Positions 234 through 57,739 of a DNA stretch of 64,000 nt are shown here, in pieces. The stretch lies in sequence record MZ475895.1; one strand, given 5' to 3'. Within the stretch, counting starts at the first letter, position 1; each line of letters starts with the position of its first letter. The notes below the pieces were generated by a model. The model did no database searches, was not told the origin of the DNA, and saw nothing but the letters and a program-made list of their open reading frames with translations. The position numbers and the translations under genes are program-made.

Positions 234-292
234 AATGAATCGGGGTGGCTAGCGCCGCCCCTTTCTTTTCTCCACTCAGGAATTATCTCTCA

Positions 293-40859: not shown

Positions 40860-40903
40860 TGGACAAAATCGTGGTTGTAGCAAAAACCGTCCTATGTTAT
40901 AAT
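40860..40903 (+). promoter_or_regulatory. Box-plus-sigma70 promoter (copy 9)
   Basis: GCATAAATC-TGGACAAAAT; TTGTAG-17 nt-TATAAT with extended TG. Confidence 0.85.
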
Positions 40904-40944
40904 AGAGATGTAGCGTAGACGTGAGGTATGCGCTATAAATTGAA

Positions 40945-41085
40945 TGACGCGTTTTTGCTTGACTGTAAGGTAGCGGTATCTTACAGTCCTTTTTCAAGTG
41001 GCTTCGAAGTTTGAGGCTTCTTGCGAAAGGTCAAATGTACCTTTGAGCGTTTTCGGATTTACGCGGTTTTCACCGACTGCGCTCT
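40945..41085 (+). ncRNA. structured 5' leader RNA, element A
   Basis: Stem GACTGTAAG(40961-69)/CTTACAGTC(40980-88), then a second stem starting CTTTTCAAG and a downstream GACTGC (41074); related to 41995-42105. Confidence 0.45.
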
Positions 41086-41112
41086 CACTTTAAACCGCAA
41101 AGGAAATACATC

Positions 41113-41934
41113 ATGCCAGAAGCACGCAAACCTCGCCCAGCTGATCGTTTCGCTAAAGCCCGTGCAGAGAAAAACTCACCGGAGCGTCAAGATGCGGCAG
41201 CCCAGCGCACGTATAAAGACACTCCGCCTAAATCTGTTCAGGTGAAACTTGATGCTGTGGCAGCTTCTAAGAAGAAAGTTTCTCGCGGCCCCAAGGCCTC
41301 TCGTCCACGTCAGTCGCCTGCTGTTGACGCAGCACCAAAGCCTCGCATTCGTGATGAGGAACGTGTGTACAATCTCGTACACATGATTCTCTCTGCGTGG
41401 AAAGCCGATGCAGAAAACGCGGCAGCAAGTGTGGGAATCATTAAAGTGTCTCGTCGTAAGATTGAGGGTGCGTTACGCGATCTCAAGAATACGCGCTTCA
41501 CTAAAATCCCAGGCTTAATCAATGACGTGCTTGTCTACAATGAACTGGTAGCTGAGTTCGGACAGTGGGTGTACGTCGAGCACGACAGTCCTGATTGGAT
41601 TTTTGTGCGCCTGCCTGAAAACAGCACGCCTGTGATTCGCGCTGACATTAGCTATGCCAAGACGGGTGAAACTTCCACGTCTGTTTCGACTTCTAGTGAA
41701 GTTCTGCTGAAAGATCTTAGCGAAGACGAAGAAGATGAGATCCCCGAGAATGTCGAGTACGACGATGCGGACGAGACTGACGAAGACGAAGAGGAGCCGT
41801 ATGACTACAGCGCTTGGTCTCTGCGTGACCTGCAGGAGTATGCGAAGCGCTATGACTTCTTGCAGCCCGACACTGAGGGGTTTGATGATCGCGAGAAGTT
41901 GATAGCAGCCATCGAGCTGGGGGAACAGCACTAA
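41113..41934 (+). CDS. basic N-terminus / acidic C-terminus protein with a terminal helix-extension-helix module (273 aa)
   Basis: Lys/Arg/Pro-rich N-terminus, Asp/Glu tract, YDYSAWSLRDLQEYAKRYDF...DREKLIAAIE. Confidence 0.88.
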   Translation: MPEARKPRPADRFAKARAEKNSPERQDAAAQRTYKDTPPKSVQVKLDAVAASKKKVSRGPKASRPRQSPAVDAAPKPRIRDEERVYNLVHMILSAWKADAENAAASVGIIKVSRRKIEGALRDLKNTRFTKIPGLINDVLVYNELVAEFGQWVYVEHDSPDWIFVRLPENSTPVIRADISYAKTGETSTSVSTSSEVLLKDLSEDEEDEIPENVEYDDADETDEDEEEPYDYSAWSLRDLQEYAKRYDFLQPDTEGFDDREKLIAAIELGEQH

Positions 41935-41943
41935 GCACAAATA

Positions 41944-41988
41944 TGGACAAAATAGTGGTAGCATCTAAAGCATGACCTGTGCTACACT
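41944..41988 (+). promoter_or_regulatory. Box-plus-extended -10 promoter (copy 10)
   Basis: GCACAAATA-TGGACAAAAT, 33 nt, TGc-TACACT. Confidence 0.8.
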
Positions 41989-41994
41989 ATAGAT

Positions 41995-42105
41995 CGAATG
42001 CCTTGTAGTTTTTTGACTGTGAGTTACTTTCCGGCTCACAGTCCTTTTTAAAGTGCTCTCCCAAGAACGCTTTAAAAAGCACAGACTGCCTGCGCTTTTG
42101 ATAGA
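41995..42105 (+). ncRNA. putative stand-alone small RNA, element B
   Basis: Sits between two promoters with no credible ORF; stems GACTGTGAG(42015-23)/CTCACAGTC(42035-43) and CTTTTTAAAGTG(42044-55)/CGCTTTAAAAAG(42068-79). Confidence 0.55.
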
Positions 42106-42116
42106 CAGCATAAATC

Positions 42117-42160
42117 TGGACAAAATCATGGTTGTATCAGAATGCTGCCTGTCATACACT
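42117..42160 (+). promoter_or_regulatory. Box-plus-sigma70 promoter (copy 11)
   Basis: GCATAAATC-TGGACAAAAT; TTGTAT-17 nt-TACACT. Confidence 0.8.
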
Positions 42161-42221
42161 TTAATGAGTCGAGCAATAGTGCTCGCAACAAACTAAATCC
42201 CAATACTGAGGAGTATTACAC

Positions 42222-43811
42222 ATGGCACGTTTCGAAACTAACACTAACCTGGTTGGCAAAACTATCGTCCTGCTGAACGGCACCAAAGCGAAGATTGAAG
42301 ACGCTATCGTTTCTGGCTACAAAGTGAAAGGCCAGACCAAGCGCATCGCAACCCGTGACGTTATCAAAGAGGGTGCGCACTTTAAAGAAATCGAGCGCAC
42401 GCCGCTGAGCCAGCTGGAAGATACTGGTGAAGGTTATGTGAAGTTGAAAGAAGCCAAAGCTGCTTCTAAGAAAGCGCCTGCGAAAGACGCTAAAGCTACT
42501 GGCAAAAAAGCTGCGGCAAAAGACAAGCCTGCTAAGACCAGCAAAAAAGCTGCCGCTAAAGATAAGCCAGCGAAAGAGCAAGAGCCGAAAGTTCGCCGTA
42601 AGTCTGCGAAAGAGCAGGGCAACGATTATCAGGAACTCGCGCAGGCTATCATCAAAGGCGGTCGCCGTGCAGCGCCAGTTGAAATTGACAGCGTAGACGA
42701 AGCGCTGACCGATGCAATCGCTAAGCGTCTGACCGCTGTTGTCGAATCGTCTGAGATTGCGAAACTCGCCGCTGATAACAAAACGCCGATCGCTAACGCA
42801 CTGACCGTAACTTACGGTGCTGAGTTTGCGACTGATGCAAACGTTGTGCAGATTACGCTGAACCTGCAATACGCTAAGCCGACTGCTGTTGAGTCTGCCG
42901 CTCCTACTCTGGAGAATGCCGAAGCAATCGCAATGCGTGCTGCTAAAATGGCCGCGCCGAAAGTGAGCGCTAAACTCAAGAAGGCAGTGCGTGAAGCATT
43001 CGATATTGAAACAGACCTTGAGCTGGGTACTGTGATTATGTCAGGCGATGATCAATTCGCTTACTACGGCGAAAGCGCGAAGCACGCTGGCAAAGCGCTG
43101 CTGTATGTTGTCGAAACTGACAAGTTCAAATCTGTCTTGGCCTCTACTCTGACCGACTACGAACTGCCTGCTGATGAAGAAGCTGAGGCAGAAGAAGAGG
43201 AGGAAGAAGAAGAGGAGGAAGAAGAACCCGCTGATGACTTCGACGACGAAGAGGAAGAAGATGCGGACGATGCAGATGATGCCGACGATGCTGATGGCGA
43301 CGACGACGAATTCCAGTACGTTGCTGTAGGCGATGAACACTTTGCTCTGGTCAACAAAAAGATCACAGCCAAGTATCACGATGCACTGGCTGAGCAATTC
43401 GGCGTTAGCACCGAAGCGCTGGTCCCAGGCTTAGTGTTGACCAACGGCGAGATCACTTTCGCTTATCTGGGCAACGATAGCAAAGGCGGCCTGCTCGTTA
43501 TCGACCTCGACGACGATGCGGACGAAGACGACAACGTTCTGGTCTACCCGAAAGCCGACGTTAAATCTCTGACCGACTTCTCTCCTGTGCTGGGTGATGC
43601 AGATGAAGAAGACGCAGACGATGCAGAAGAGACCGACGAAGAAGACGAAGATCAGGACGACGACTTCGAATTTGACGATGCGCCGACTGCCGACCTCGAA
43701 GATCTGTCCGACGATGAGCTGCGTGACCGCGCTGTTGAGATGGGCCTGACCACTGTACGCAAAGCTGACAAAATGAACGCCAAGCAACTGCGTGCGCTGC
43801 TGTCTGAATAA
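42222..43811 (+). CDS. multidomain Lys/Ala-rich plus Asp/Glu-rich protein with a C-terminal helix-extension-helix module (529 aa)
   Basis: GAGGAG upstream; KKAAAKDKPAK repeats; long Asp/Glu tracts; DLEDLSDDELRDRAVEMGL...KMNAKQLRALL. Confidence 0.92.
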   Translation: MARFETNTNLVGKTIVLLNGTKAKIEDAIVSGYKVKGQTKRIATRDVIKEGAHFKEIERTPLSQLEDTGEGYVKLKEAKAASKKAPAKDAKATGKKAAAKDKPAKTSKKAAAKDKPAKEQEPKVRRKSAKEQGNDYQELAQAIIKGGRRAAPVEIDSVDEALTDAIAKRLTAVVESSEIAKLAADNKTPIANALTVTYGAEFATDANVVQITLNLQYAKPTAVESAAPTLENAEAIAMRAAKMAAPKVSAKLKKAVREAFDIETDLELGTVIMSGDDQFAYYGESAKHAGKALLYVVETDKFKSVLASTLTDYELPADEEAEAEEEEEEEEEEEEPADDFDDEEEEDADDADDADDADGDDDEFQYVAVGDEHFALVNKKITAKYHDALAEQFGVSTEALVPGLVLTNGEITFAYLGNDSKGGLLVIDLDDDADEDDNVLVYPKADVKSLTDFSPVLGDADEEDADDAEETDEEDEDQDDDFEFDDAPTADLEDLSDDELRDRAVEMGLTTVRKADKMNAKQLRALLSE

Positions 43812-43834
43812 GTAACCTGTAGTTCTGAATACAT

Positions 43835-43852
43835 GCGGCTCGAAAGGGCCGC
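43835..43852 (+). terminator. GNRA-loop hairpin, variant of the 2802/50334 hairpin
   Basis: GCGGCTC-GAAA-GGGCCGC, no U-tract. Confidence 0.55.
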
Positions 43853-43886
43853 ACACTGACAACAAAGTTGATTGAGGAATCACATT

Positions 43887-45173
43887 ATGTCAAACGCAAA
43901 CAAAATTCTGCTTAACGCTCGTGTACGCCGCTTAGACGGTACTGTTACTTACATCAACAAAGTGAATGCTAACGGTTATAGCACCGATGCGAAAGGCCCG
44001 CAGATTCCTGTCAAGCGCATTGTGTTTGCAGGCAAGATGCTGAAAGAGATTGAACAGCCCTTTGAGAAAGGCGAGCACGTCATTGTGCAGGGCGTTGCAG
44101 TGAAGCTGAACAAGCGCCAGCAACGTGAGCTTGCTGATGGCACTCTCGATGAGAAAGCGCTGCGTCCTGAGTTCGGTAAGCTGGCAGTGATTGACCCTGA
44201 TACAGGCAAAGCAACTGACGGCAAGAAAGTGAAGCCAACCAAGTCTGATGCTAAAGCCCCGAAAGCTGGCGCGAAAGCAAGTCTGAAAGCAACGCGTGAG
44301 CACAACAAAGAGCCGAAGCGCAGTCGCAAACAGCACAAAGCTGAAACGAACGATCTCAAAGACAGTCTGGACATTATCGACGAACGCAAATCACCGAAAG
44401 CGTCTCTGATTGAACGTCTGGATGCAGCAATCGCCGAAGCGAAAACGAAAGCACGCCGTAAGCTGTTAGCCGAAACGTTCGACATGGACTGGGCTGATAT
44501 TAAAAAGCATGGCGGTGCAGGTATCGTTAAGCAGCACGGCCGCAAGAACGCCCAGAAGTTTATTGATCGTCAGACAGTGCAGGTCGATAGCACAACGTTC
44601 ATCAAACAAATGCCAGCGCCGCTCAAGCGTCTTATTCAGGACACTGAGTTGCGTCTCAATCAAAAGCAGATTGAGCAAGTGCTTGGTGCGCTGGGGCTTG
44701 ATACGCAATTCTACGCAGTCGCCGTGCAGGAGCTGCTGGGCAAACTCAAACTGTCCATAGGCGGTCGCGTGATCGAAGGCGAAGTTGTTCGAAAGGAGAA
44801 CACGCCGAAGCCAAAAAGGTTCGTACACGCTGAGGCGCTATATGCAGACAAGAAAGAAGCGAAACGCCGCGTAAGCAAAATGAAATATGCGCTGCTGATT
44901 CCGCCTACGAAAGGTCTGCCTGCGTTACGCATCCATCAGGCAGAGGCAAAGCAGTCACTCGCCGTTCTGCTGCACCTGAAGCCTGGGAACATCAAGCGTG
45001 GTCTGCTTGCGTATGACAACAAAGGCCGTGAGTATATGTATGTCGCTTGCGATATGACGGGCCCTGTGTTCATCGATAAAGATAGCAACGAACTGGCGTT
45101 CACGTATGCCAATCTGATCGATAACTTCAAACTCAAAGCGCAGCCTGTGTCTGAACTGGACGTGGCCGTATGA
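43887..45173 (+). CDS. basic paralogue of 42222..43811 (428 aa)
   Basis: GAGGA before ATG 43887; shares the N-terminal L(N/D)GT...GY...KEIE domain and a C-terminal beta domain with the previous gene. Confidence 0.88.
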   Translation: MSNANKILLNARVRRLDGTVTYINKVNANGYSTDAKGPQIPVKRIVFAGKMLKEIEQPFEKGEHVIVQGVAVKLNKRQQRELADGTLDEKALRPEFGKLAVIDPDTGKATDGKKVKPTKSDAKAPKAGAKASLKATREHNKEPKRSRKQHKAETNDLKDSLDIIDERKSPKASLIERLDAAIAEAKTKARRKLLAETFDMDWADIKKHGGAGIVKQHGRKNAQKFIDRQTVQVDSTTFIKQMPAPLKRLIQDTELRLNQKQIEQVLGALGLDTQFYAVAVQELLGKLKLSIGGRVIEGEVVRKENTPKPKRFVHAEALYADKKEAKRRVSKMKYALLIPPTKGLPALRIHQAEAKQSLAVLLHLKPGNIKRGLLAYDNKGREYMYVACDMTGPVFIDKDSNELAFTYANLIDNFKLKAQPVSELDVAV

Positions 45174-45556
45174 GAACTGAAATCATCGTAGCGGGAGTTC
45201 TCTCTCAACTTTACACGCGGCTGATTACGGCCGCTATAATGAAAGCGCATGTGTATTACTCAGACCTTGCGCCGGTGGTATTCGGTGTGCAGCTTACCAA
45301 AGTCGGTAAGTCGCAGTATCAAGCGCTGTGGGATTTAGTAGCGCTGACGATGCAGATGGACCACGCACACGGCCGACCGCCTGTTGCTGCTCTGTATGTG
45401 TCTCGCGCTAATGCATCAAAACGACCGCCGCAAGCATTCTTCGCTGAATACGAGCGGCTAACTGGTAAGCGACTCAATGACGACGACTGGGAAGAGTTAG
45501 TCGATGAAGTATGGGCAGCTTACTCTCCACCAGAAATCTGTCAGGAGCCGACATGA
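45170..45556 (+). CDS. winged-helix-like protein (128 aa)
   Basis: YYSDLA...GRPPVAALYVSR...PPQAFF resembles the TY.eLA / RP.LsalVV / P..GFF family often found next to restriction-type nucleases (recall). Confidence 0.5.
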   Translation: MRTEIIVAGVLSQLYTRLITAAIMKAHVYYSDLAPVVFGVQLTKVGKSQYQALWDLVALTMQMDHAHGRPPVAALYVSRANASKRPPQAFFAEYERLTGKRLNDDDWEELVDEVWAAYSPPEICQEPT

Positions 45557-46011
45557 AGAAGTTGAAAGCCGTAAAGGTTAAAATTAGCCGCGGTGGTTAT
45601 AAGCCTTCTTCTAAGGAAGAGGCAAAGAAGCTGGTGGCAGAGTTTCTGCTCGGCACCATCGGCATTAGCCCAACGCAAGTCAGTCAACAACTGCTGTTGA
45701 ATATCACGAACTACAACTATTTGACCTCTGTTGCGTATTCTGGACGTTCTACAGATTACAGCCAGGCGGCAGCGCACAAAACTGTAAAAGAACTAAATGA
45801 ATTTTGTCGAAAGCATAAAATTCAACTGGGCTTGCTAATTATGCCCCACACGTCGGCGTCTGAATATGATGGTGACGTAATTGTTGCAATCCCGTGGGAG
45901 CATGTTAAGAACAATCCGCAAATCCAGTCTGCCGTTAATTCTCTGTTTGAATCGGTTGAAGCAGACGGCTACCCACAGTATGTGACTGATGCTAAAACAG
46001 TAGAGGGATAA
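45553..46011 (+). CDS. hypothetical protein (152 aa)
   Basis: AGGAG before ATG 45553; ATGA overlap. Confidence 0.8.
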   Translation: MKKLKAVKVKISRGGYKPSSKEEAKKLVAEFLLGTIGISPTQVSQQLLLNITNYNYLTSVAYSGRSTDYSQAAAHKTVKELNEFCRKHKIQLGLLIMPHTSASEYDGDVIVAIPWEHVKNNPQIQSAVNSLFESVEADGYPQYVTDAKTVEG

Positions 46012-46012
46012 G

Positions 46013-47293
46013 ATGTTCTACGACTATGTATTCAACTTCGACGAGCGCCAGACGCTACTGTCGTTAGCGGAATCCAAGTATCTTCTTAAACGGGACATTC
46101 CCGAGTATCTTAAAAAGTCCAAACACGCAATTGAGATTCGTCACACTGTGACCAATCGTGGACGCGAGCGCCGCTCAGGAACAATAACAACTCCTATCGT
46201 GCCGCGTATTCACACCCGTGATGTTATGCGCTTGCTTGATGATATTCGTGACAACGCGACTTACAGCTCCTGCCAAAGTCTCGCTGAACTGTTTGAATTG
46301 GGCTTGGGCGTTCCGCGCCAGAAAGATATTGCTACTTACCTTCATGCTTATTCGCGTGAGCACGATAAGAAAGGTATCGGTATCAAGTATATCCGCAAGC
46401 TGGTGGTTGATTATCATCGTAAGCACCGTCGTAGTATGGCGGGCAGTCGCTGGTTAATGCCTGCTGCTTACACGGCCAATCTGCTGAACATGCAGAACTT
46501 CATTCATCTGAAAGAAGACGGCTACAAGGGTAAAGTCAAAACGCCAGACGGCATCCCTGTAGTCTTGATTTACCAGAGCACTGAATACGCGACTGGCGAG
46601 TTTACTCTGTGTGACGCATTCATGATTAGTCCGATGGGATATCCAATGCCGTTCGCACAGATTGCGCTGCGTCCCGAGTTCAAGGCTGTGCCTAAAACGT
46701 TTTGCTCCCAAGCTCTGCGTGGCAAAGGCATGTACTCAATGGTTCTCGGTATGATTTACTGGGAGAAAGGTGATTCAGTCGAATTGACACGCGAAGTCAT
46801 GGAGATTGATGACAACCAGTATCTCACGTTGCTCGATGATGAACGTTATGCTGACCGCCGCTCTGATGAATATTCAGCGATGCTGGTCAAGCGTGAAGAG
46901 TTCCGTCGCAATCGTGACAAGTGGCAGTCAGTGATTGATAAGTACGGCCAGACAGTTCGAACCCTCAAGCCTGAGATTAGCGCTCGTCTTGATCGTGCTC
47001 GTCAGTTCTTCTACGACCGCTCCGAGTTCCTGAAAGAGTTCGAGTCTCAGGAGAAGCGTGAGAACACCCGCGCATCAAAACGTTTTGCTGTAGCGTCTGC
47101 GATGTTTGCTGCGATTGACTGTGGGACAATTGCTGATCGTCAGACCTACCTTGCAGTGAGCACAAAGATTGATAAAGTGCATGACATTCTCGGTAAGTGG
47201 GGATTCAACACTGTAAAATCTGTTAATGCTAGTTTGAAGAAGTCTCTTTTAACCTATGACGAATCAGGCGTATCTCGCGTCTGGTCACTATAA
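46013..47293 (+). CDS. hypothetical protein (426 aa)
   Basis: Long ORF; GAGGG upstream. Confidence 0.88.
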   Translation: MFYDYVFNFDERQTLLSLAESKYLLKRDIPEYLKKSKHAIEIRHTVTNRGRERRSGTITTPIVPRIHTRDVMRLLDDIRDNATYSSCQSLAELFELGLGVPRQKDIATYLHAYSREHDKKGIGIKYIRKLVVDYHRKHRRSMAGSRWLMPAAYTANLLNMQNFIHLKEDGYKGKVKTPDGIPVVLIYQSTEYATGEFTLCDAFMISPMGYPMPFAQIALRPEFKAVPKTFCSQALRGKGMYSMVLGMIYWEKGDSVELTREVMEIDDNQYLTLLDDERYADRRSDEYSAMLVKREEFRRNRDKWQSVIDKYGQTVRTLKPEISARLDRARQFFYDRSEFLKEFESQEKRENTRASKRFAVASAMFAAIDCGTIADRQTYLAVSTKIDKVHDILGKWGFNTVKSVNASLKKSLLTYDESGVSRVWSL

Positions 47294-47314
47294 CCCTTAT
47301 CTGAGGAGATAAAC

Positions 47315-50300
47315 ATGTCCGAGAACAATCAAAGCGGAGCTACTCGCTTCGGCACAGAAGTGCAGGCCGGCATCGCAGAAGCGCAACGCCGTGCTAACTC
47401 TGCTGAGAGTGGCAAGCTGAACAAATGCACGATCATCGTGCTGACTTCGATTGACGCCAACCAGCGTTACTCTTATCTGTCCGCAGACGAACAACTGCGC
47501 GAAGAACTGGTGCGTGGTAAAGTAATCAATCGTCTGCCTGATCTGTTAGAGCGTGCTGGTGGTAATACCGCTGCTGACAATAACAGCGCGTTCCACATCC
47601 TGCATCCAAACAACGGTGTGCCTACCTCGATCGATGCTCGCATCAAAGTGGGCGAAGGCAATGCGGTCATTCTGTCATATACTGTAAACAAAGCAGTGAC
47701 AGAGATGCACGGTAGCTTATCGCTTGCTCTGTTTGCATCTGGCGCCGAAGACTTAAATGATCTGGCCGCTGATTTCGGTATTCACGCAATTGCGATTGTT
47801 GAAGAATCGAAAGCCGCTGAGTTCATCAAAGGACTTGAAGCTCAGGTGGAAGCGTTGAATATTGTAAATCTCACTAGCATTGATGATTCTAACGATTCGT
47901 TAGACCTGCCAGTGATTGACTTCGCTGCATTAGCGGGCAATCCTACAACAGTGCTTACGGGCGCTGTGCGTACCTTCATCATGCAATCAATCAGCGGCGA
48001 AGTCTTCGCTGCAATCCCTAATAACGGAGAACTGAACGTGAAAAACGATAACGTGGCTCAGCCTGCTGACCTGGAAGAAGACTTCGACAACAATGATGAG
48101 ATTGTTGATCAGAACGGCGGCGAAGGCGAAGTTACTGGCGAAGAGCTGCTGGGCTACAAAGCAGAAAATCTTTCGCTTGACCAAATGCGTAGTGCGCTTG
48201 AAGCGATCAACTACGACCTGTCTGAAATGACGGAAGAAGCAATCCGTGAAGCGTTCGAAACTGAACAGAACCTTTACCTGGGTGGCGGCGATGATGAATC
48301 TTCCGAAGAAGAGGAAGATGAAGACGCCACTGATGTTGACAGCGACGAAGAAGAAGAGGAAGAAGACGAGGAGTTCGATGCTCCTGCGTATCTGGCTCAA
48401 GCGCTCGCTGCTGAAAACTTTAGCCGTAGCGATCTGAAACTGCTGGTCAAGTCGCAAGACCTGAAAGTGATGAAGAACGACACTCCTGAAACTCTGGTGC
48501 AGAAGCTGCTGGACCTGGTGCAGGACGCATCGTCTGATGAAGTGTTCGAACTGATCACTGTGTTCGTTGAACTGCTGGACGAGCACGGCGTTGAGTGTGA
48601 CGCGCTGCGTGCTACCATCGCTGAGGATGAAAGCGATGAAGACGAAGAAGAGGACGGCGAAGACGAAGACGCCGATGAAGATGGCGACGACGAAGAAGAG
48701 GAAGATGAAGAGGAGTCTGATGAAGACGAATCTGAAACCGAATCTGACGACGAACCTGCAACGCTGTTTTCTGCCTCTGACGTTACTGATCCTCTCGACT
48801 ACTTCCAGTTCGAAGGTGGTGACCTGACTCACGAACAACGCGCCGCTGCCGTACAGGCGATGGGTTCAAGCACTGTTGGTCTGAACATCGTTCAGGTCAT
48901 GAAAGCGTTCAATCAAATCCGTTCACAGTCTAACGCGATTGACATTGCCGCTGATGAAGCCGACTCTGCGCTGTACGACATGCTGACTGCGCTGCCGTAT
49001 GCAACGCTGCTGAGCTTCGCTCAAGAGATTGAGCTGGACGTTGACGGCGAAGAGTCTGCCGAAGATCTCGTCACTTTGCTGATGGACGAATCTACTGCCG
49101 ACAGCGATACGCTGAAAGCGCTGGCGTATGTGTTTGAAACCTACGGCGGCCTGGGTGTTGAAGCAGATGATATCCTGCTGATGGACTGGCATGAAGCGCT
49201 GGCGCTGGTTATTCCTGTGTATGCATCGTCAGACGAAGTTGAGTCCGATGCAGAAGAAGACGAAGACGAAGACGTTATCGCTGATGAAGATTCGTCTAAC
49301 GCTAACCTGAAGTTCCTGAAATCTGTTGACGTCAACAACCCTGTCGGCCCGATGCTCGAAGTTGATATGGACCGCACTCTGGTTATCAACTACACCTTCA
49401 CTGACGGTAACACTTACCGCGATGTGCAAGATGAGCTGGCTGATATCGGTGGCGTTAACTACCGCTTCCCGTTCAATCTGGGCAAAGCTGGTAAAGCAAA
49501 CAAGAGCAGCGCGCCTGGTAGCCTGATTGCTCCTGCTGAACATCTGATCGCAATGTTAGACCGCGCTGGTACTACTCGCTTCTTAGCTGACCCGAACACC
49601 TTCGATGTTGGTGTGTGGGCAGAATCTCTGGAGCGTATGCTGAACGCAGAAATCGCTAACAATCTGTATGCTGGTCGCATTGAAGACGGCGCTGACCCGC
49701 AGCAAGCTGGCATCGTAGTCGGTGACTTCATCGATGAAGACGAGCAAGCAGAAGTTGCTGACCTCGGCCTGCTGGATGAAGATGAGCTGGAAGCGTACAC
49801 TGGTGATCATCTGCCGATTGCAAGCCTGTACAATGCGCAAGCCCGCGTACGTCCAGTCAACGTCGATAGCTCTTACGTTGCACTGAGCACCGTAGTGCTG
49901 AACGTTGCAGTCCCTGGCTTCTGGTGTGACTCTGATGTTGGCCGTCTGGTGCAAGCGTGTGTTAATCGCGTAATCAGCCTGGCAGAAAGCGTTGAAGGCA
50001 TCAAAGTGTACGCAGGCTTCACTCTGGAATCTGCTGCGCTGCTGAACAACGGTCGCCTGTACGAAGTTGTTGGTGCGCTGCGTGAGATGGACGGTGTGCA
50101 GTCTTACTCCGCCGCAGACGCTGCTAACTTCTCAGAAGCGGAAGACATTATCGAAGTAGCGTCTTCTATCGATGATCGTGACCTGCCGTTCACTGTACTG
50201 GCAAGCGGCCTGTCTGGCGCAACGTTTGAAAACGGCGGTGACCTGACCGTGCTGGTTCCGTGCTCTGTCTTCGACGAAGAAGAAGATGAGTCCGAAGAGG

Positions 50301-50326
50301 ACGAGTCAGAAGAAGACGAAGAGTAA
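47315..50326 (+). CDS. very large acidic protein (1003 aa) with repeated helix-extension-helix-like modules
   Basis: GAGGAG upstream; several poly-Asp/Glu tracts; modules AENLSLDQMRSALE, AENFSRSDLKLLVK, LTALPYATLLSFAQEIEL. Confidence 0.92.
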   Translation: MSENNQSGATRFGTEVQAGIAEAQRRANSAESGKLNKCTIIVLTSIDANQRYSYLSADEQLREELVRGKVINRLPDLLERAGGNTAADNNSAFHILHPNNGVPTSIDARIKVGEGNAVILSYTVNKAVTEMHGSLSLALFASGAEDLNDLAADFGIHAIAIVEESKAAEFIKGLEAQVEALNIVNLTSIDDSNDSLDLPVIDFAALAGNPTTVLTGAVRTFIMQSISGEVFAAIPNNGELNVKNDNVAQPADLEEDFDNNDEIVDQNGGEGEVTGEELLGYKAENLSLDQMRSALEAINYDLSEMTEEAIREAFETEQNLYLGGGDDESSEEEEDEDATDVDSDEEEEEEDEEFDAPAYLAQALAAENFSRSDLKLLVKSQDLKVMKNDTPETLVQKLLDLVQDASSDEVFELITVFVELLDEHGVECDALRATIAEDESDEDEEEDGEDEDADEDGDDEEEEDEEESDEDESETESDDEPATLFSASDVTDPLDYFQFEGGDLTHEQRAAAVQAMGSSTVGLNIVQVMKAFNQIRSQSNAIDIAADEADSALYDMLTALPYATLLSFAQEIELDVDGEESAEDLVTLLMDESTADSDTLKALAYVFETYGGLGVEADDILLMDWHEALALVIPVYASSDEVESDAEEDEDEDVIADEDSSNANLKFLKSVDVNNPVGPMLEVDMDRTLVINYTFTDGNTYRDVQDELADIGGVNYRFPFNLGKAGKANKSSAPGSLIAPAEHLIAMLDRAGTTRFLADPNTFDVGVWAESLERMLNAEIANNLYAGRIEDGADPQQAGIVVGDFIDEDEQAEVADLGLLDEDELEAYTGDHLPIASLYNAQARVRPVNVDSSYVALSTVVLNVAVPGFWCDSDVGRLVQACVNRVISLAESVEGIKVYAGFTLESAALLNNGRLYEVVGALREMDGVQSYSAADAANFSEAEDIIEVASSIDDRDLPFTVLASGLSGATFENGGDLTVLVPCSVFDEEEDESEEDESEEDEE

Positions 50327-50333
50327 TTGACAT

Positions 50334-50351
50334 GCGGTCCTTCGGGGCCGC
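50334..50351 (+). terminator. UUCG hairpin identical to 2802-2819
   Basis: GCGGTCCTTCGGGGCCGC. Confidence 0.55.
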
Positions 50352-50377
50352 AATCTTTCTCAACAGGAACTGTCTAA

Positions 50378-51199
50378 ATGTCAGAACAAGTTGATCACGC
50401 AACTAACATCATTAAGATGGTTAGTGACCGTGATGCTAAGATTAGCGAGCTGTCTGTTACGGCAAACGAGCTGCAAGGTCAGGTGAATGACTATGCTGCC
50501 GAACTCGCCGCATCTGCTGTGCGTGAAACTGCATTGCGTTTGAAGCTACGTTCTCAAGAGCGCCAGACGAATACCGATTTAGTTCGTCTGGAAACTCGCA
50601 CGAAAGAGCTGGTGGATATTTCAAACACTCAGATGGCCGAAAGTAACGAGCTTAAAGCACGCGTTGAAGAAATGAACGCTAAGCTGGCGCAAGTTGACCC
50701 GATGCCGTTCGTGCTGCATCTGGTTGCTGTGCAAGCCGCATCTGTGTTCTCGTACATGGTGCAGTCGTTTGCTCATGCTCATGTTAACCAGCGCACCAAC
50801 GATACCACACGCACACTCAGTGCTCTGATGGTAGGCGAAACAGCGCGGCGTTATCAGTCTTTCGAAAAGACCATCGCTCGTTACTGCAACTCGATTGGCG
50901 CTGAACGTCCGAAAGCAAATGATGTGCGTAACGCTTTCCCTGACTTCATGCGTAATGAAGCTGATTTATTCTGTAAAGACCCGAAGTACAGTCACGATTG
51001 CATGGCGTTAGCTGCTATGCTTAATCTGCCTCGTACATCGTGGATGTATCGAAAGTCTCTGGACGCCGTAAACCACTTCGCGTGGATTGCAGCTTTCGAA
51101 GGCAGTCCTCAAGAGTTTGAGTCAGATTCAGATTACAACGAATTATACGTTAACTCGCTTATCGATATTGCAAGCGCGTTAATCGGGCAAAACTTTTAA
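50378..51199 (+). CDS. coiled-coil hypothetical protein (273 aa)
   Basis: AGGA upstream; heptad-like N-terminal half. Confidence 0.85.
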   Translation: MSEQVDHATNIIKMVSDRDAKISELSVTANELQGQVNDYAAELAASAVRETALRLKLRSQERQTNTDLVRLETRTKELVDISNTQMAESNELKARVEEMNAKLAQVDPMPFVLHLVAVQAASVFSYMVQSFAHAHVNQRTNDTTRTLSALMVGETARRYQSFEKTIARYCNSIGAERPKANDVRNAFPDFMRNEADLFCKDPKYSHDCMALAAMLNLPRTSWMYRKSLDAVNHFAWIAAFEGSPQEFESDSDYNELYVNSLIDIASALIGQNF

Positions 51200-51225
51200 T
51201 CTGTAAAACTTCCCTGTGATTTATT

Positions 51226-51244
51226 CTGTAAACACTAATTGAAG
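51226..51244 (+). promoter_or_regulatory. second motif class CTGTAAACAYTAATTGAAG (candidate phage-sigma promoter)
   Basis: 18 of 19 nt identical to 51940-51958; another CTGTAAA at 51201. Confidence 0.55.
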
Positions 51245-51294
51245 TTCGCAACGGGCAAAAGCCCAAATCGAAAAATTAACGGAGTTCCACTACA

Positions 51295-51864
51295 ATGGCA
51301 AAAGCTACTAAGTCAACTAACCTGGTTCCTACCCTGGTTTCTCGCATCGCTAAAAAGTCTGGCTCTATCGGTACTTCGAAAGCAAAAGCAACTGACCTGC
51401 CGCATGACATTCTGATCGAATCTCAGCACGTTGTCGAAATCATCGGTTATATCACTGACCGTTCTGCGAACCACGTTACTCTGCGTCACAAAAAAGGCCA
51501 CGGTTCTTCTTCTCAGATCGTTTCAACCTTCGGCCCGGGTCAACTGCTGACCGTTCTGGGTGAAGCTGGTTCACACGGTTCTGTGCGTGCGCTGATTACT
51601 GCTCCGGTCTGCGAACTGAAAGGCTTCACCATTAAGTATGACGGCGATACCATCATCGCTACTTCTATCGAAACTGGCGAAGTGATTCACGTTAACACCC
51701 AGCTGGCCGGTCACACCGTTCGCGCTACTGTGAACGAAACTGCCGCCGCTAAGAAATACGGCACGCCTGCTCCAGGCAAAGGCAAGAAAGATGCTAAGCC
51801 TGCTAAAGCAGACAAAGCAGCGAAAGGCGGTAAGAAAAAGAAAGGTAGCGACGAAGACTTTTAA
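51295..51864 (+). CDS. protein with two beta-rich repeats and a Lys/Ala-rich tail (189 aa)
   Basis: GGAG upstream; VEIIGYITD... / CELKGFTIK... internal repeat; tail PAKADKAAKGGKKKKGSDEDF. Confidence 0.88.
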   Translation: MAKATKSTNLVPTLVSRIAKKSGSIGTSKAKATDLPHDILIESQHVVEIIGYITDRSANHVTLRHKKGHGSSSQIVSTFGPGQLLTVLGEAGSHGSVRALITAPVCELKGFTIKYDGDTIIATSIETGEVIHVNTQLAGHTVRATVNETAAAKKYGTPAPGKGKKDAKPAKADKAAKGGKKKKGSDEDF

Positions 51865-51897
51865 TCGCTGATCTGAAAATCTGTAAAAACTGATTAT

Positions 51898-51927
51898 GCA
51901 GAGCAACAAAAAATAAAGTTGCTCTGC
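51898..51927 (+). terminator. perfect 10-bp hairpin with an A-rich loop
   Basis: GCAGAGCAAC-aaaaaataaa-GTTGCTCTGC. Confidence 0.6.
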
Positions 51928-51939
51928 CGTTAAACGAAT

Positions 51940-51958
51940 CTGTAAACATTAATTGAAG
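51940..51958 (+). promoter_or_regulatory. second motif class, copy 2
   Basis: CTGTAAACATTAATTGAAG; another CTGTAAA at 51881. Confidence 0.55.
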
Positions 51959-51994
51959 CAAGTCGCTTCTCATCCCATACAGGAAATAAAAACC

Positions 51995-52789
51995 ATGGCT
52001 AAATCTGCTAAAGTAACCGTAACCGTCGCACAGAAAGTTCTGGCTCAGATGCTGGGTGTTGTTGTAGCGAACGCAAGCGAGAAAGAACTCGTTGCGATTC
52101 TGTCTGACCTGGGCCTGACTGTTGCTGCGAAAGGTAAAGGTGCTAAAGCTGAGAAAGCTGCGAAAGGCGGCAAGAAAGCTAAAGCCGCTACCGTTGCTCA
52201 GATCGTTAAGGCCGTTGAAGAAGAGGAAGCTATCTCCCTCGACGGCGTAAGTGAAGATGACCTGCGTGCTGCGGTCGTCAAAGCTAAGCTGGCTAAGGCC
52301 AACAAAGCTAAAGCGCTGGACGAAGAGGAGTTGACTGAACTCCTGACCGACGCAATGGGTGCCGAGTCTGATGAAGACGAGGAAGAGGACGAAGAAGAAG
52401 AGGACGAAGACGAGGACGAAGACGACTCGGACGACGAAGACGAAGATGAAGACGACGAGGACTCAGATGATGAAGATGAGGACGAAGACGACGAAGATTC
52501 GGACGACGAAGACGAGGACGAAGATGATGAGGAGGAAGACGAAGACGAGGATGAAGATGAGGACGAAGATGAAGATCTCGACCTCGACGGCCTCGACGAA
52601 GACGAACTCCGCGCCCTCGTGATCGACAACAAGCTGGCCACTAAGGCCAAAGCTAAAAAGATGGACGAAGACGAACTTCGTGAACTGTGTGAATCCCACT
52701 TCGGCGGCGACGATGAAGACGAAGACGAAGATGAGGACGAAGACGATGAAGACTTCGACGACGAAGACGAAGACGAAGACGACGAATAA
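51995..52789 (+). CDS. bipolar Lys-rich / poly-Asp-Glu protein with duplicated helix-extension-helix modules (264 aa)
   Basis: AGGA before ATG 51995; about 70-residue Asp/Glu run; LDGVSEDDLRAAV...KAKALDEEEL and LDGLDEDELRALV...KAKKMDEDEL. Confidence 0.92.
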   Translation: MAKSAKVTVTVAQKVLAQMLGVVVANASEKELVAILSDLGLTVAAKGKGAKAEKAAKGGKKAKAATVAQIVKAVEEEEAISLDGVSEDDLRAAVVKAKLAKANKAKALDEEELTELLTDAMGAESDEDEEEDEEEEDEDEDEDDSDDEDEDEDDEDSDDEDEDEDDEDSDDEDEDEDDEEEDEDEDEDEDEDEDLDLDGLDEDELRALVIDNKLATKAKAKKMDEDELRELCESHFGGDDEDEDEDEDEDDEDFDDEDEDEDDE

Positions 52790-52840
52790 GTCCTGATCTG
52801 CCGCTGCCCTGCAAGACTAATGAGTGTCTGCGCAGGGCAA

Positions 52841-52871
52841 GAAATATTCGAAAAATAGTTCGAATTATTTC
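52841..52871. promoter_or_regulatory. AT-rich inverted repeat with two TTCGAA palindromes (operator-like)
   Basis: GAAATA-TTCGAA-aaatag-TTCGAA-TTATTTC upstream of the histone-H1-like gene. Confidence 0.4.
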
Positions 52872-53002
52872 GCAAAAAGTTTGAAAAATTCCTGTCGTTG
52901 TTTATTGCACATAGTAATATTCGACTACAGGAATTAAACCTGAAAAATTTTACTTTTATCCAACGCGACGAGTCGCACACAATAAATTCACGGAGTATTA
53001 CG

Positions 53003-53515
53003 ATGACTAAGAAAATCATTTCTGGCCTGAACAAAAACCTGAAAGCTATCGCTAAATCAGAAGCTGCCCTGGCCAAAACTGTTGTTGCTACCAACAAAGA
53101 GATCGAAAACCTGGGTTCACAGCGTGCTGGTATCGAAGCGCAGATCGCTGAACTGTCTGGCGTTGCTGCTCCTGCCAAAGCTGATAAAAAAGCTAAAGGC
53201 GCGAAAGCAGAAAAAGCGGCCAAGCCTGCTAAAGCTGAAAAAGCAGCTAAAGCCGGTAAGAAAGAAAAAGCTGCTAAAGCTGAAAAGCCTGCCAAAGCTG
53301 ATAAAAAAGCTAAAGGCGCGAAAGCGGATAAAGCTGCTAAGCCTGCCAAAGCTGAAAAAGCTGGCAAGAAAGAAAAAGCTGCTACCAAGCCTGCTAAAGC
53401 TGATAAAAAAGCTAAAGGCGCCAAGGCCGACAAAGCTGCTAAAGGCGGTAAAGCTGACAAAGCCGGTAAGAAAAAGAAAGCGCAGTCTGATGACTTCGAA
53501 TTCGAAATGGAATAA
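53003..53515 (+). CDS. histone H1-like (AlgP/Hc2-type) Lys/Ala/Pro repeat protein with an N-terminal coiled coil (170 aa)
   Basis: GGAG before ATG 53003; three PAKADKKAKGAKA(D/E)KAAK units; ends SDDFEFEME. Confidence 0.88.
   Translation: MTKKIISGLNKNLKAIAKSEAALAKTVVATNKEIENLGSQRAGIEAQIAELSGVAAPAKADKKAKGAKAEKAAKPAKAEKAAKAGKKEKAAKAEKPAKADKKAKGAKADKAAKPAKAEKAGKKEKAATKPAKADKKAKGAKADKAAKGGKADKAGKKKKAQSDDFEFEME
53171..53490 (+). repeat. imperfect tandem coding repeat with 117 and 102 nt periods
   Basis: CCTGCYAAAGCTGATAAAAAAGCTAAAGGCGC starts at 53171, 53288 and 53390. Confidence 0.85.
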
Positions 53516-53545
53516 GCAAGCGGTCGCATAGCGCGATAACTTGAT

Positions 53546-53580
53546 CGAGAGGGCAGCGCTGACGGGCGTTTGCCCTCTTG
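53546..53580 (+). other. long intergenic hairpin
   Basis: CGAGAGGGCAGCGCT-gac-GGGCGTTTGCCCTCTTG. Confidence 0.55.
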
Positions 53581-53612
53581 TCGTATCTATCTCATTTTCG
53601 AGGCTCTTTAAA

Positions 53613-54098
53613 ATGTCCAAACAAGAAGTATTCAACAGGCTTGATGATCTTCACTCCAAAGAACGTGAGCGTATCAAACAAGCCAAGCAAGGCCCCTCCT
53701 ATTTCGAACTGACGAACCTGCGTATTGAAGCAGCCGCTCGTCTAGCTCGTGCTCTCCAAACTCTCAAAGCCGCAAACGTTGTTGGTAACGTTGAAGGTGT
53801 CTCTCTGCAGGAAGATGCGCTTGAAGTCGCTCAAGCCTACTGGACTGCTATCTTAGATGGCTTAACCCCTGTAGTAGTTGATGACTCGCCTATGCGCAAG
53901 CTGCTTGCTGGTATGCCTGCATGTATCGAAGCCTTCCGTGTTGTCGTAATGGAAAGCGCTATGCGTGAACATCTGGTCGTTCAATGCAATGCGATTGCAG
54001 ATGACATTAAGGGCTTCCCGCAACTGACTGGGCATGTTCTGCCTACTATTCAACACACCTGCGAAGAGGGGTGCAACTGTGGCTCAATCACTGAGTGA
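53613..54098 (+). CDS. hypothetical protein (161 aa)
   Basis: GAGG before ATG 53613. Confidence 0.8.
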   Translation: MSKQEVFNRLDDLHSKERERIKQAKQGPSYFELTNLRIEAAARLARALQTLKAANVVGNVEGVSLQEDALEVAQAYWTAILDGLTPVVVDDSPMRKLLAGMPACIEAFRVVVMESAMREHLVVQCNAIADDIKGFPQLTGHVLPTIQHTCEEGCNCGSITE

Positions 54099-54849
54099 GA
54101 AGATTAACCGTTACTTCAATCTGATGGAGGACATCCGTGCTGAGATGTTCCGTGTGATTGATGTATCTGACCGTTACTTCGGTATCGTTAGTTTCAACAC
54201 TAACATGCAGGCACTGCAAACCACACTGGTGAGCAAGTCCACCCTGATGGAAGTTAAGCTGCTTGAGGGTATCACTGGTGCGGAGCTGATTGCGTTTGGC
54301 AATATGGTTCACACTGTAGAGCAATGGGTTGCTGGTGGCATGAAGGGTGCTTTCCCTATCGAGCAGACCAAAGACGTGTATGCCAAATATCGCGCTGCTA
54401 CCTCAGATGAACCACAGGCACAAAGTGAACCTGAGCCTGCTAATACCCCGCAGCCTGATGCTGATGAGTTAGACAGCCAGGAACTGGACAATATCAAAGT
54501 TCAACTTCTGTCCTTCGATGACTCTGAACTGATCGACCATGCCGCTCAGTTTAAACTTGGGACGCGTACACGCCTGAGAAGAATGAGCCGAGACGATCTG
54601 CTGGACATGCTGTTTGACCATCACGGTATCTATGCAGAAAACGACCAGCGCCGTAATGAAAGTGTTGCAGACTGGTTAGAACGTATACCTCTTGATGATG
54701 CGCTCCGTGAAGTCGACCGCATAGATGATAGCAGTGTACTTGATCACGTTGCGGACGCTATGAGCGTTATGACGGGTGTCAATGACGCTGTGACGCGAGC
54801 GCGTATTAAGCAGGCTCTGAAAGAGCTACACACTAAGCCCGCGCAGTAA
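54079..54849 (+). CDS. protein with helix-extension-helix modules (256 aa)
   Basis: GAGGGG before GTG 54079; LLSFDDSELIDHAAQFKL...RRMSRDDLLDMLFD. Confidence 0.85.
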   Translation: MAQSLSEKINRYFNLMEDIRAEMFRVIDVSDRYFGIVSFNTNMQALQTTLVSKSTLMEVKLLEGITGAELIAFGNMVHTVEQWVAGGMKGAFPIEQTKDVYAKYRAATSDEPQAQSEPEPANTPQPDADELDSQELDNIKVQLLSFDDSELIDHAAQFKLGTRTRLRRMSRDDLLDMLFDHHGIYAENDQRRNESVADWLERIPLDDALREVDRIDDSSVLDHVADAMSVMTGVNDAVTRARIKQALKELHTKPAQ

Positions 54850-54873
54850 GTCAAATTTGTCTCTACACTAAGC

Positions 54874-54918
54874 TGGACAGATCGTGGGTAGCGTCTGACG
54901 CTCTGCCTATGTTATAAT
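54874..54918 (+). promoter_or_regulatory. Box-plus-extended -10 promoter (copy 12), drives the topoisomerase operon
   Basis: CACTAAGC-TGGACAGAT, 33 nt, TGt-TATAAT. Confidence 0.8.
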
Positions 54919-54989
54919 ACATATAGGACAAGTAGTGTCTGAATATGCTAATATCGAGTGGTCAACGCTACTCATTAGGAGAAACGAAA

Positions 54990-57014: not shown

Positions 57015-57268
57015 TGTTCAACAACGCAAAATGGTCTGACGGTACGATGCTACGTTTTCTCGATATGCCTGACGTCCAGCATCCGCCAATGACCGAAGAA
57101 CAACACAAGCAGTATGAGGCGTTAATGGCAAAAGGTCGTGAGTTGTCGAAAAACGTTACTGTATCTGCATTCAGTGTAGTTGACGGTAAGCCTGCTAAGC
57201 GTGTGCAGGTGCAGATGAGTCGCACAACTCTCGATAAGATTAATGCGATGCACTCAGGAGATCAGTAA
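57011..57268 (+). CDS. small protein, paralogue 1 (85 aa)
   Basis: ATGA-coupled to gyrB; FLDMPDVQHPPMTEEQ. Confidence 0.8.
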   Translation: MMFNNAKWSDGTMLRFLDMPDVQHPPMTEEQHKQYEALMAKGRELSKNVTVSAFSVVDGKPAKRVQVQMSRTTLDKINAMHSGDQ

Positions 57269-57507
57269 TGCTCAAGGGTAAGAAAGTCAACCAAGCACCG
57301 TCGCGTGCTGCACGAATCTTTCCTGTAGTCGCTGGTACAGAGCACTGGCATATCCCGTTGTTCGATATGCCTGACATTCACATCAATATGAGCGAGGAGC
57401 AGAAAGCTCGTCTTGATTCTGCTATGGCTAACGTCAAGCAACACATTAAAGATAGCCCGTACAACGGGAAGCGATTCTTTACTATGCCTGGAGATGCTCA
57501 TGAATAA
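57268..57507 (+). CDS. small protein, paralogue 2 (79 aa)
   Basis: TAATG coupling; LFDMPDIHINMSEEQ. Confidence 0.8.
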   Translation: MLKGKKVNQAPSRAARIFPVVAGTEHWHIPLFDMPDIHINMSEEQKARLDSAMANVKQHIKDSPYNGKRFFTMPGDAHE

Positions 57508-57739
57508 GTTCCAGCGTCACATTAAATCTCTGCCCGAATCTGGTGCCAGCTTTCAGCAAGCAGCACCGCTCGGCCGTACTGTCGTAACACATTCAGCGGG
57601 TATCACACGCGGTGTAACTCGCATGGCTTATCCTCAGTTGCAGCAAATCCCGCGCAACTTATCGGGCCTGAATGATGTGAACGTTCGTCGCATCGATATT
57701 AACTTGGATGAAAACGTTTTCATCCAGACGCATTCGTAA
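57500..57739 (+). CDS. hypothetical protein (79 aa)
   Basis: GGAG before ATG 57500. Confidence 0.7.
   Translation: MNKFQRHIKSLPESGASFQQAAPLGRTVVTHSAGITRGVTRMAYPQLQQIPRNLSGLNDVNVRRIDINLDENVFIQTHS

Follow-up and report, generated by a model that had tools for sequence, protein, structure and literature searches.

The prothymosin-alpha/histone H1 pair and the chaperones of the nucleoplasmin type are among the described systems that come close to the gene cluster that is the subject of this work, which extends over positions 41113-54849 of a stretch of 64,000 nucleotides (hereafter the window) from the genome of pEa_SNUABM_14 (MZ475895.1; 264 kb), a jumbo phage of the fire-blight bacterium Erwinia. 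The genes are referred to as slots A to M in the order in which they are encoded (Table 1), and are followed by the genes of a type IIA topoisomerase (topo II). With the prothymosin-alpha/H1 and nucleoplasmin-type systems the cluster shares opposite high net charges and disordered chains, here encoded side by side, and its acidic tracts hold embedded aromatic residues, as do histone-binding acidic motifs; it differs in the absence of homology, in a basic side that is polyampholytic with a low charge density, and in the lack of an H1 globular domain. The composition of K may fit a Lys/Ala/Pro-rich tail of the linker histone H1 type, but 13% Asp or Glu (D/E) is interspersed in it. A second comparison is offered by single-stranded DNA-binding proteins (SSB) and T7 gp2.5: the acidic tips of SSB recruit partner proteins, and both K and P0077, a protein from an unrelated phage (see below), end in an acidic-aromatic tip after a basic region that resembles a DNA-binding one, whereas Pfam, NCBIfam and PDB sequences gave neither an OB fold nor homology to SSB, and the annotated SSB of the phage ends in poly-Lys. 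With DNA mimics such as Ocr, ArdA and DMP12 the cluster has in common a strong negative charge, a phage origin and plausibly early expression; mimics of this type are compact folded proteins, whereas the charge of the cluster resides in tracts that AlphaFold2 (AF2) predicts to be disordered (predicted local distance difference test, pLDDT, below 50). The chimallin nucleus of the Chimalliviridae is likewise a jumbo-phage strategy for organising replicating DNA; by contrast, pEa_SNUABM_14 belongs to the Lu11/PaBG/Y3 group, and no chimallin shell protein is annotated in the tables of its close relative pEa_SNUABM_7 (hereafter SNUABM_7), in which no dedicated search was made. Finally, Gp27 of phage SPO1 is reported to be a modular phage protein whose phase separation concentrates nucleic-acid machinery (PMC13401047); it is a single transcription factor of a Bacillus phage without sequence relation to the cluster, for which a condensate is a mere possibility.

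Comparison between genomes supports the view that the cluster is a coherent, conserved system under selection, in which gene order, sizes, charge, modules and motifs persist to ~26-35% identity. The order and sizes of B-M, together with topo II, are retained in Alexandra, Y3, Yoloswag, JA11, fHe-Yen9-02, SNUABM_5 and AD1, which with SNUABM_14 make up the eight phages compared here (7-8 genera), and also in a 222-kb metagenomic phage contig (L015) that was located via the module search described below and whose F protein is only 26% identical to that of the window. The original prediction, a reading of the letters of the window that proposed a phage chromatin or condensate system, had pointed to synteny in related jumbo phages as a check, and this has held. 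Positions 41000-55000 of the window match pEa_SNUABM_14 at 100%; SNUABM_7 (genus Snuvirus, 265.6 kb) is 99.7% identical to them, and the Alexandra-like Erwinia and Dickeya jumbo phages are relatives at ~74% nucleotide identity to the same segment; in the published literature, Lu11, PaBG, Y3 and the Dickeya JA phages are grouped with these phages as the "Lupandier" or hairy-myovirus group. The B, F and G families are restricted to this clade. Slot A is peripheral and not conserved, its homologue being found in Alexandra only and there without the C-terminal end of A. Our preferred, if tentative, reading makes B-M a conserved accessory module of DNA metabolism, not part of the virion, that would be expressed early or in the middle of infection, ahead of replication or in parallel with it, and would work with the adjacent type IIA topoisomerase.

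The property that best marks the cluster is charge. A dense acidic tract was defined as at least 18 D/E in 30 residues, and genome-wide scans were made on SNUABM_7 minus positions 200001-201599 (~1.6 kb). Of eight genes for which charged tracts had been claimed, A, B, G and J contain dense acidic tracts, and B, I, J and K, more weakly C, contain Lys/Ala tracts, whereas M, with at most 10 D/E per 30 residues, lies below the tract threshold and has no charged tract. Half of the eight acidic-tract open reading frames (ORFs) of the genome fall in this 5.2% of the sequence, and so do four of its eight Lys/Ala-tract ORFs (binomial P = 4e-4 in both cases). The claim of opposite charges stands for the acidic side, which is extreme (residues 107-208 of J carry -78 across 102 amino acids) and, in B and G, the two slots for which AF2 models were made, predicted to be disordered with pLDDT below 50. 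It stands less well for the basic side: the Lys/Ala tracts are polyampholytic and mildly positive (in K, +27 across 170 residues, with the interspersed acidic residues noted above), and +6 or more per 15 residues is reached in K by short blocks only. The label "H1-like" was found to describe composition and nothing else, as K and I have no H1, winged-helix or other match in Pfam, NCBIfam or PDB sequences.

The net charge of each of these proteins varies little among the eight phages and is similar in L015 (Table 1). The tracts themselves are imperfect repeats of varying length. Despite the 99.7% identity of the two genomes, the J gene of the window (264 amino acids) and that of SNUABM_7 (250 amino acids; L001, 19996-20748) are 42 nt apart in length, which indicates that the length of the poly-D/E tract changes on very short time scales. 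Together with the near-constant net charge, this means that length drifts while charge is held. Single aromatic positions within the tracts are also fixed, namely the tip of K (also in L015), the F-x-F of B (F482 and F484, invariant in the second acidic tract ahead of the module in alignment A2 of 33 sequences) and the D-F of J.

The second hallmark is a 43-residue helix-linker-helix unit, referred to here as the module, which profiles confirm in B, in J (two copies) and in M. The original prediction placed it in five genes by means of a regular expression that gives no match at all, its own examples included, because its spacing is off by one. Matches of a seed-built hidden Markov model (HMM) that counted the seeds themselves were dropped as circular, and leave-one-out profiles, orthologues and hhalign comparisons were used instead. 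When the protein in question is left out of the profile, B and J are still significant (7e-5 and 3e-7), while the M module becomes weak (0.15), and the B module aligned against the J module with hhalign gives E = 9e-12. For G, sequence HMMs found no module; profile-profile comparison of residues 364-414 with J 195-232 (E = 5e-6, probability 86%) supports one unit, and the AF2 model of G contains four helix(~10)-linker(~9-10)-helix units lying between acidic tracts, so that a module in G is moderately supported. The C-terminus of A, the fifth gene, shows no similarity to the module (hhalign E = 0.26) and has a match of its own to Ish1 (E = 3.7e-4). The module assignment is firm for B, J and M, although weaker in M once M is left out of the profile; it is moderately supported for G, where profile-profile comparison backs one unit, and unsupported for A. 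In SNUABM_7, significant module matches are found in this cluster only.

The resemblance of the module to the helix-extension-helix (HeH) class was also part of the original prediction, which named Rho_N, SAP, LEM and HeH, and it survives as a probable likeness of fold but not as membership. In the AF2 model of the B module, helices 497-506 and 520-528 are separated by a short helix (512-516), with pLDDT of 85-92, which is compatible with this class. The B module matches SAP (E = 1.2e-3) and LEM (E = 0.033) under the respective cut-offs, and the best Pfam scores all stay below the gathering values (SAP 18.9 vs 23.9 bits, LEM 14.2 vs 24, and Ish1, with the A terminus, 21.2 vs 26.6). When 26 module copies were compared with Pfam, LEM matched 5, SAP 3 and Ish1 1, all sub-threshold and with little else coherent, and a transitive test in which 20 outside relatives of the module were scanned with Pfam gave 2 sub-threshold SAP matches and none that reached a threshold. 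The module profile found no HeH protein among PDB sequences; its top match there, a segment of a Nudix-type hydrolase (E = 0.019), was judged a chance hit. Foldseek queries were whole chains, with which a unit of 40 residues is not scorable; the weak BFVD neighbours of G include two viral proteins named Rho-N-like (E = 0.029 and 0.52), and a "SAP domain" protein among the Foldseek neighbours of G (probability 0.06) counts as no evidence. The module is like the SAP, LEM, HeH, Ish1 and Rho N-terminal domains in its ~35-43 residues, in the two helices with an extended linker that AF2 predicts and in its recurrent sub-threshold Pfam matches, and unlike them in scores that stay under gathering (best E ~4e-4 to 1e-3), in its setting within poly-Asp/Glu and in its frequent repetition. 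Taken as a whole, the predicted structure and the profile matches suggest that it is an uncatalogued family whose fold is probably of the HeH type.

In a library of 1.84 billion representatives, 28 proteins were retrieved with a profile built from the four copies of the window. Of the 26 library matches to the module, 23 have a net charge of -10 or below, and 2-4 module copies are often present. P0077, which is acidic and has four modules and an acidic-aromatic C-terminal tip, is encoded on an unrelated 20-kb phage contig, where the genes of a PDDEXK nuclease and an AAA_24 ATPase immediately precede it and those of DNA polymerase A, dUTPase and primase-helicase lie further upstream. This neighbourhood and the acidic relatives suggest that the polyanion-plus-module architecture recurs in DNA-replication neighbourhoods.

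Some weaker or more distant copies were seen in passing. SNUABM_7 gp303 (window 28950-30161, + strand), outside the cluster, encodes 403 amino acids with a net charge of -31 and up to 21 D/E in 30 residues; it has a weak module-HMM match at residues 238-267, and a type 1 promoter-like element (see below) stands directly after the gene. SNUABM_7 gp318 (window 37515-38906, + strand; 463 amino acids) has a marginal match. A 512-residue protein of a metagenomic phage (L019, 10001-11539) contains a clear module copy, and by gene-size order (after an SLT transglycosylase and small genes) its slot looks equivalent to that of gp318.

The position of the cluster in the genome bears directly on its role. 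In the SNUABM_7 annotation, a minus-strand block (gp080-gp222) holds the head, sheath, tube and fibre genes and most annotated virion genes, and the charged cluster lies outside it, in a plus-strand block with SSB, UvsX, a sigma factor, many small ORFs and topo II. This arrangement counts for a non-virion role. All genes of the cluster region are annotated as hypothetical in RefSeq, none as structural, and PHROGs assigns the cluster genes to families without function. The ORFs named in the original prediction were recovered, and Pfam domains confirm that the topo II genes directly follow the cluster: the large subunit (topo II-B) has GyrB-type and Toprim domains and topo II-A a GyrA/ParC-type breakage-reunion domain, which together define a type IIA topoisomerase. 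Both subunits have basic N-terminal tails, a short Lys/Ala tail in topo II-B that is kept in all eight phages and a Lys-rich tail of ~45-55 residues in topo II-A, where 15-19 K/R occur within the first 60 residues, again in 8/8 phages.

Two classes of promoter-like motifs connect the cluster with topo II. Type 1 elements with a -10 box occur at seven sites genome-wide, all of them between 231 and 261 kb of the 265.6-kb genome; they precede not only A, B and topo II-B but also the gene after topo II, and those upstream of B and topo II are conserved in Alexandra and AD1. As type 1 is confined to the final ~35 kb of the genome, these genes may form a local regulon that has an upstream recognition site of its own. 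Type 2 elements number 31 genome-wide, where ~8 would be expected. They lie on the coding strand, in most cases 30-50 nt ahead of a start codon, and the genes that they precede include those of the clamp loader and the sigma factor; the elements upstream of I and of J are each conserved in 7/8 phages. Neither motif was found upstream of 24 virion genes that were inspected, including head, sheath, tube and portal. The distribution of the two motifs argues for non-late expression of the cluster and for its co-regulation with topo II, to which it is tied physically and probably also transcriptionally.

According to the preferred reading, G, J and B would be multivalent polyanions that serve as flexible scaffolds or counter-ions, with the small helix-linker-helix modules and the acidic-aromatic motifs interrupting poly-Asp/Glu as putative docking points. 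The Lys/Ala-tailed proteins K, I and C may bind DNA, as may the topo II subunits by means of the Lys-rich tails that they carry themselves, and the polyanions may hold, buffer or hand over these DNA binders by multivalent electrostatic contacts. The outcome would be a replication-factory hub in which DNA-binding proteins and topo II are concentrated and regulated on replicating phage DNA, and which may or may not be a true phase-separated condensate.

Several points weigh against this reading. For none of the twelve B-M proteins did Pfam, PHROGs, NCBIfam, PDB sequences or Foldseek searches of the PDB yield a homologue that has been characterised, and the modest cationic charge of the basic partners weakens a simple polycation/polyanion picture. 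The plus-strand block also houses the terminase and portal genes, and adjacency to topo II could reflect common timing alone. The promoter classes are defined by motif inference alone, and the promoters of I and J also hold a TAATT element like the one upstream of several virion genes, so that I and J may be expressed late. The large terminase and unrelated proteins have Lys-rich tails as well, and the idea that they are a targeting code specific to the cluster was rejected for this reason.

A role in host takeover fits the same data almost as well as the accessory module does, and is a possibility of lower, though appreciable, probability. Here G, J and B would act as DNA mimics or decoys and, at an early stage of infection, would sequester DNA-binding proteins of the host such as nucleoid proteins, RNA polymerase and restriction or other defence nucleases. 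The Lys/Ala proteins would coat or compact the host nucleoid, and topo II would be a mere neighbour expressed at the same time. Phages are known to use acidic proteins that mimic DNA, and this explanation agrees with the sigma-70-like, early-type promoters with an extended -10 ahead of A and B, with the extreme and conserved charge density, with the lack of enzymatic domains in Pfam and NCBIfam, and with an upstream region rich in small ORFs without annotated function. Yet the DNA mimics that we know of are small and folded with a patterned surface charge, not disordered poly-D/E proteins of 1000 residues, and no match to a known mimic was obtained in Pfam, PHROGs or Foldseek. Nor does host takeover account for the conserved modules and acidic-aromatic motifs, for the pairing with basic proteins, for the synteny with topo II that is strictly kept in distant relatives, or for the module-bearing acidic P0077 in a replication/recombination operon of an unrelated phage.

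Rather doubtful is a sub-case of the preferred reading, the stronger form of the idea from which the analysis started, a shell-less, self-organising compartment for phage DNA in which G, J and B would co-condense with K, I, C and DNA, the HeH-like modules and the motifs would provide specific valency, and charged tails of their own would bring in topo II and SSB. Multivalent, oppositely charged disordered chains are present, which is a prerequisite for a condensate and only that, and a search of the literature on the clade returned no report of demixing or focus formation.

An association with the virion is unlikely, whether the proteins were packaged with the DNA as internal head or ejected components, served as scaffolds in head assembly or made up the tail "hairs" of the hairy-myovirus group. 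In the literature the clade bears the name "hairy Myoviridae" and its appendage proteins are unassigned, the particles of jumbo phages contain many proteins without a known function (the PaBG virion list holds five unknowns), three other acidic-tract ORFs adjoin head genes, and the TAATT element of the I/J promoters is seen ahead of some virion genes. These points are set against the location of the cluster outside the main virion-gene block, the absence of type 1 and type 2 motifs at the 24 virion genes and the lack of any structural label in RefSeq. Long polyanions would be, from general electrostatics, an unfavourable cargo beside packaged DNA. Moreover, the 14 abundant virion proteins of PaBG, which comprise Coomassie-visible bands only, do not obviously include its G-like protein of 356 residues. 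As for the three acidic ORFs themselves (SNUABM_7 106503-106907, 108885-110957 and 118251-120197, - strand; L012), they contain dense acidic tracts and neighbour the genes of the major head protein and the head protease; one is annotated as "ATPase", none is related to the module family, and scaffold or core proteins are a plausible assignment. Finally, that no concerted system exists, and that the genes are independent, fast-evolving low-complexity ORFans with a generic amphipathic helix pair for a module, is highly improbable, for although the presence of A and of the C-terminal half of M varies between phages, H is barely conserved, tract lengths vary between nearly identical genomes and the module stays under every curated Pfam threshold, the order, size and net charge of the slots are kept to ~26% identity, the module occurs nowhere else in the genome and its few relatives in the large library are nearly all acidic, and single aromatics within poly-D/E are invariant.

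The coordinates of the genes and of their parts are collected in Table 1. In B, the N-terminal barrel has PWWP, Tudor and KOW barrels as its top fold matches (~56-64 columns), none of them significant (E >= 0.44, Foldseek), and the whole chain has no Foldseek match in the PDB at E <= 0.001. The N-terminal domain of C is a paralogue of this barrel (hhalign of B 5-59 vs C 3-57, E = 2.3e-7), and a profile search of PDB sequences with C found no relative. F has a mean column identity of 62% in alignment A4 and homologues in 57 phage records; it has no match in Pfam, PDB sequences or NCBIfam. For the end domains of G, Foldseek against BFVD gives PaBG S5WKD4 (4.8e-5) and two unnamed viral entries as relatives; BLAST makes no link between G and PaBG, and Foldseek against the PDB gives no match for G at E <= 0.001. 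H has nothing beyond weak coiled-coil/SMC-type matches in Pfam and NCBIfam. The tail of I resembles that of K (hhalign E = 2e-5, with the caveat of low complexity). The K orthologue of pEa_SNUABM_5 (gp339, L007 12152-12658) is annotated as "putative valyl-tRNA synthase", which is almost certainly a low-complexity mis-annotation. NCBIfam matches of J to a sigma factor and of H to SMC, far under the cut-offs, were set aside as low-complexity and coiled-coil noise, and an antisense ORF at 52198-53529 (- strand, 443 amino acids, rich in Ser, Ala and Leu) mirrors the coding tracts of J and K and was discarded as a low-complexity artefact, not a gene.

Table 1. Genes, protein parts and putative regulatory elements of the charged cluster and the adjoining topoisomerase genes; nucleotide positions are those of the window, and domain limits marked AF2 come from predicted structures.
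Feature	Position (nt)	Strand	Length or residues (aa)	Net charge (range in eight phages; L015)	Remarks
Type 1 promoter-like element	40860..40911	+			TGGACA[AG]A box, then extended -10; upstream of A
Further type 1 elements (starts)	41944, 42117; 54874; 59449; 39673; 30163	+			B is preceded by 41944 and 42117, topo II-B by 54874
Hairpins with T-run	40961-40988; 42015-42043	+			ahead of A and of B; GC-poor, similar, 60-100 nt downstream of type 1 elements
Slot A	41113..41934	+	273		
A, acidic tract			194-237		
A, C-terminal Ish1-like helix pair	41806-41910		232-266		
Slot B	42222..43811	+	529	-62 (-56 to -78; -66)	
B, SH3-like beta-barrel	42261-42446		14-75		N-terminal; AF2
B, Lys/Ala tract	42453-42623		78-134		disordered; AF2
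B, folded parts			135-312; 364-450		alpha/beta domain; second domain; AF2
B, acidic tracts	43143-43343; 43569-43727		308-374; 450-502		
B, module	43689..43808	+	490-529		C-terminal; helix, short helix, helix; 8/8 phages
Slot C	43887..45173	+	428	+29 (+22 to +31; +13)	Lys-rich middle region after N-terminal domain
C, N-terminal domain	43893-44057		3-57		paralogue of B barrel
Slot D	45170-45556	+	128		ordinary composition; position conserved; no Pfam match
Slot E	45553-46011	+	152		ordinary composition; position conserved; no Pfam match
Slot F	46013..47293	+	426	+14	best-conserved globular protein of the cluster
Slot G	47315..50326	+	1003	-185 (-174 to -201; -144)	AF2 mean pLDDT 75
G, end domains			38-235; 663-985		N-terminal alpha/beta; C-terminal alpha/beta; AF2
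G, acidic tracts	48044-48130; 48269-48403; 48599-48772; 49214-49309; 50246-50323				disordered
G, helix-linker-helix units 1-2	48176-48283; 48425-48520		288-323; 371-402		AF2
G, helix-linker-helix units 3-4	48830-48919; 48998-49084		506-535; 562-590		AF2
Slot H	50378..51199	+	273		helix-rich N-terminal half; sequence poorly conserved
Type 2 promoter-like elements (TCTGTAAA)	51200..51250 (51200, 51225); 51880, 51939	+			upstream of I; upstream of J
Slot I	51295..51864	+	189	+11 (+11 to +16; +11)	ordinary N-terminal part
I, Lys/Ala tail	51736-51861		148-189		
Slot J	51995..52789	+	264	-97 (-89 to -105; -94)	47% D/E
J, Lys/Ala block	~52124-52213				
J, module 1	52232-52360	+	80-122		two modules in 8/8 phages
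J, poly-D/E	52313-52618				
J, module 2	52577-52705	+	195-237		two modules in 8/8 phages
J, acidic tail	52679-52786				one invariant D-F
Slot K	53003..53515	+	170	+27 (+26 to +30; +23)	29% K/R, 28% A
K, repeats	53226-53481				2.5 imperfect 34-aa Lys/Ala/Asp/Glu repeats, after N-terminal ~60 residues
K, acidic-aromatic tip [DE][DE]F[DE]F	53489-53512		163-170		8/8 phages, also L015
Slot L	53613..54098	+	161		ordinary composition
Slot M	54079..54849	+	256		N-terminal ~110 aa conserved; C-terminal half variable
M, module	54499-54627	+	141-183		SNUABM_14 and AD1 only (2/8 phages)
Topo II-B (GyrB-like large subunit)	54990..57014	+			Pfam DNA_gyraseB 1e-26, Toprim 1.2e-8, DNA_gyraseB_C 2.7e-7
Topo II-A (ParC/GyrA-like)	57749..59410	+			Pfam DNA_topoisoIV E = 4.7e-58

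The two hairpins between the type 1 elements and slots A and B may be attenuators, leaders or short RNAs, to judge from their position and sequence; Rfam and tRNA scans gave no match at either. Rfam matches to archaeal snoRNAs lie inside GA-rich coding tracts and are spurious, and the scan found no tRNA, though the record of one relative annotates a tRNA in the region. Between the topo II genes (57011-57739, + strand), relatives have from none to three small ORFs, which marks a variable insertion point. Further downstream, an ORF at 61505-62368 (+ strand) is called "DNA topoisomerase" in a RefSeq relative; it has no Pfam match at E <= 0.01, which makes the label doubtful. At the other end of the window, the end of the gene annotated as SSB in SNUABM_7 (window 3-233, + strand) encodes a C-terminus of at least 76 residues in which poly-Lys/Ser and poly-Asp/Glu blocks alternate up to a poly-Lys end. 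Such a charged-block tail is unusual for an SSB and is a second case on a DNA-metabolism protein.

In jumbo phages without a protein-shelled nucleus, the question is how a replicating genome of ~260 kb is organised and protected, and the cluster is a concrete, conserved candidate for this function. Its twelve syntenic genes conserve net charge more than any other property, and the module fused to them, which Pfam does not list, goes along with polyanionic tracts in other phages as well. Even on a conservative reading, this amounts to a new protein family and a new architecture, in which poly-Asp/Glu, a helix-linker-helix module and an acidic-aromatic motif are combined and linked to phage DNA metabolism. 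If the condensate reading were true, the cluster would be a bacterial virus's own genetic programme for polyanion/polycation organisation, of which examples are rare, and if the compartment reading were true, it would represent a phage analogue of acidic-chaperone/linker-histone chromatin and, in another jumbo-phage lineage, an alternative to the chimallin nucleus.

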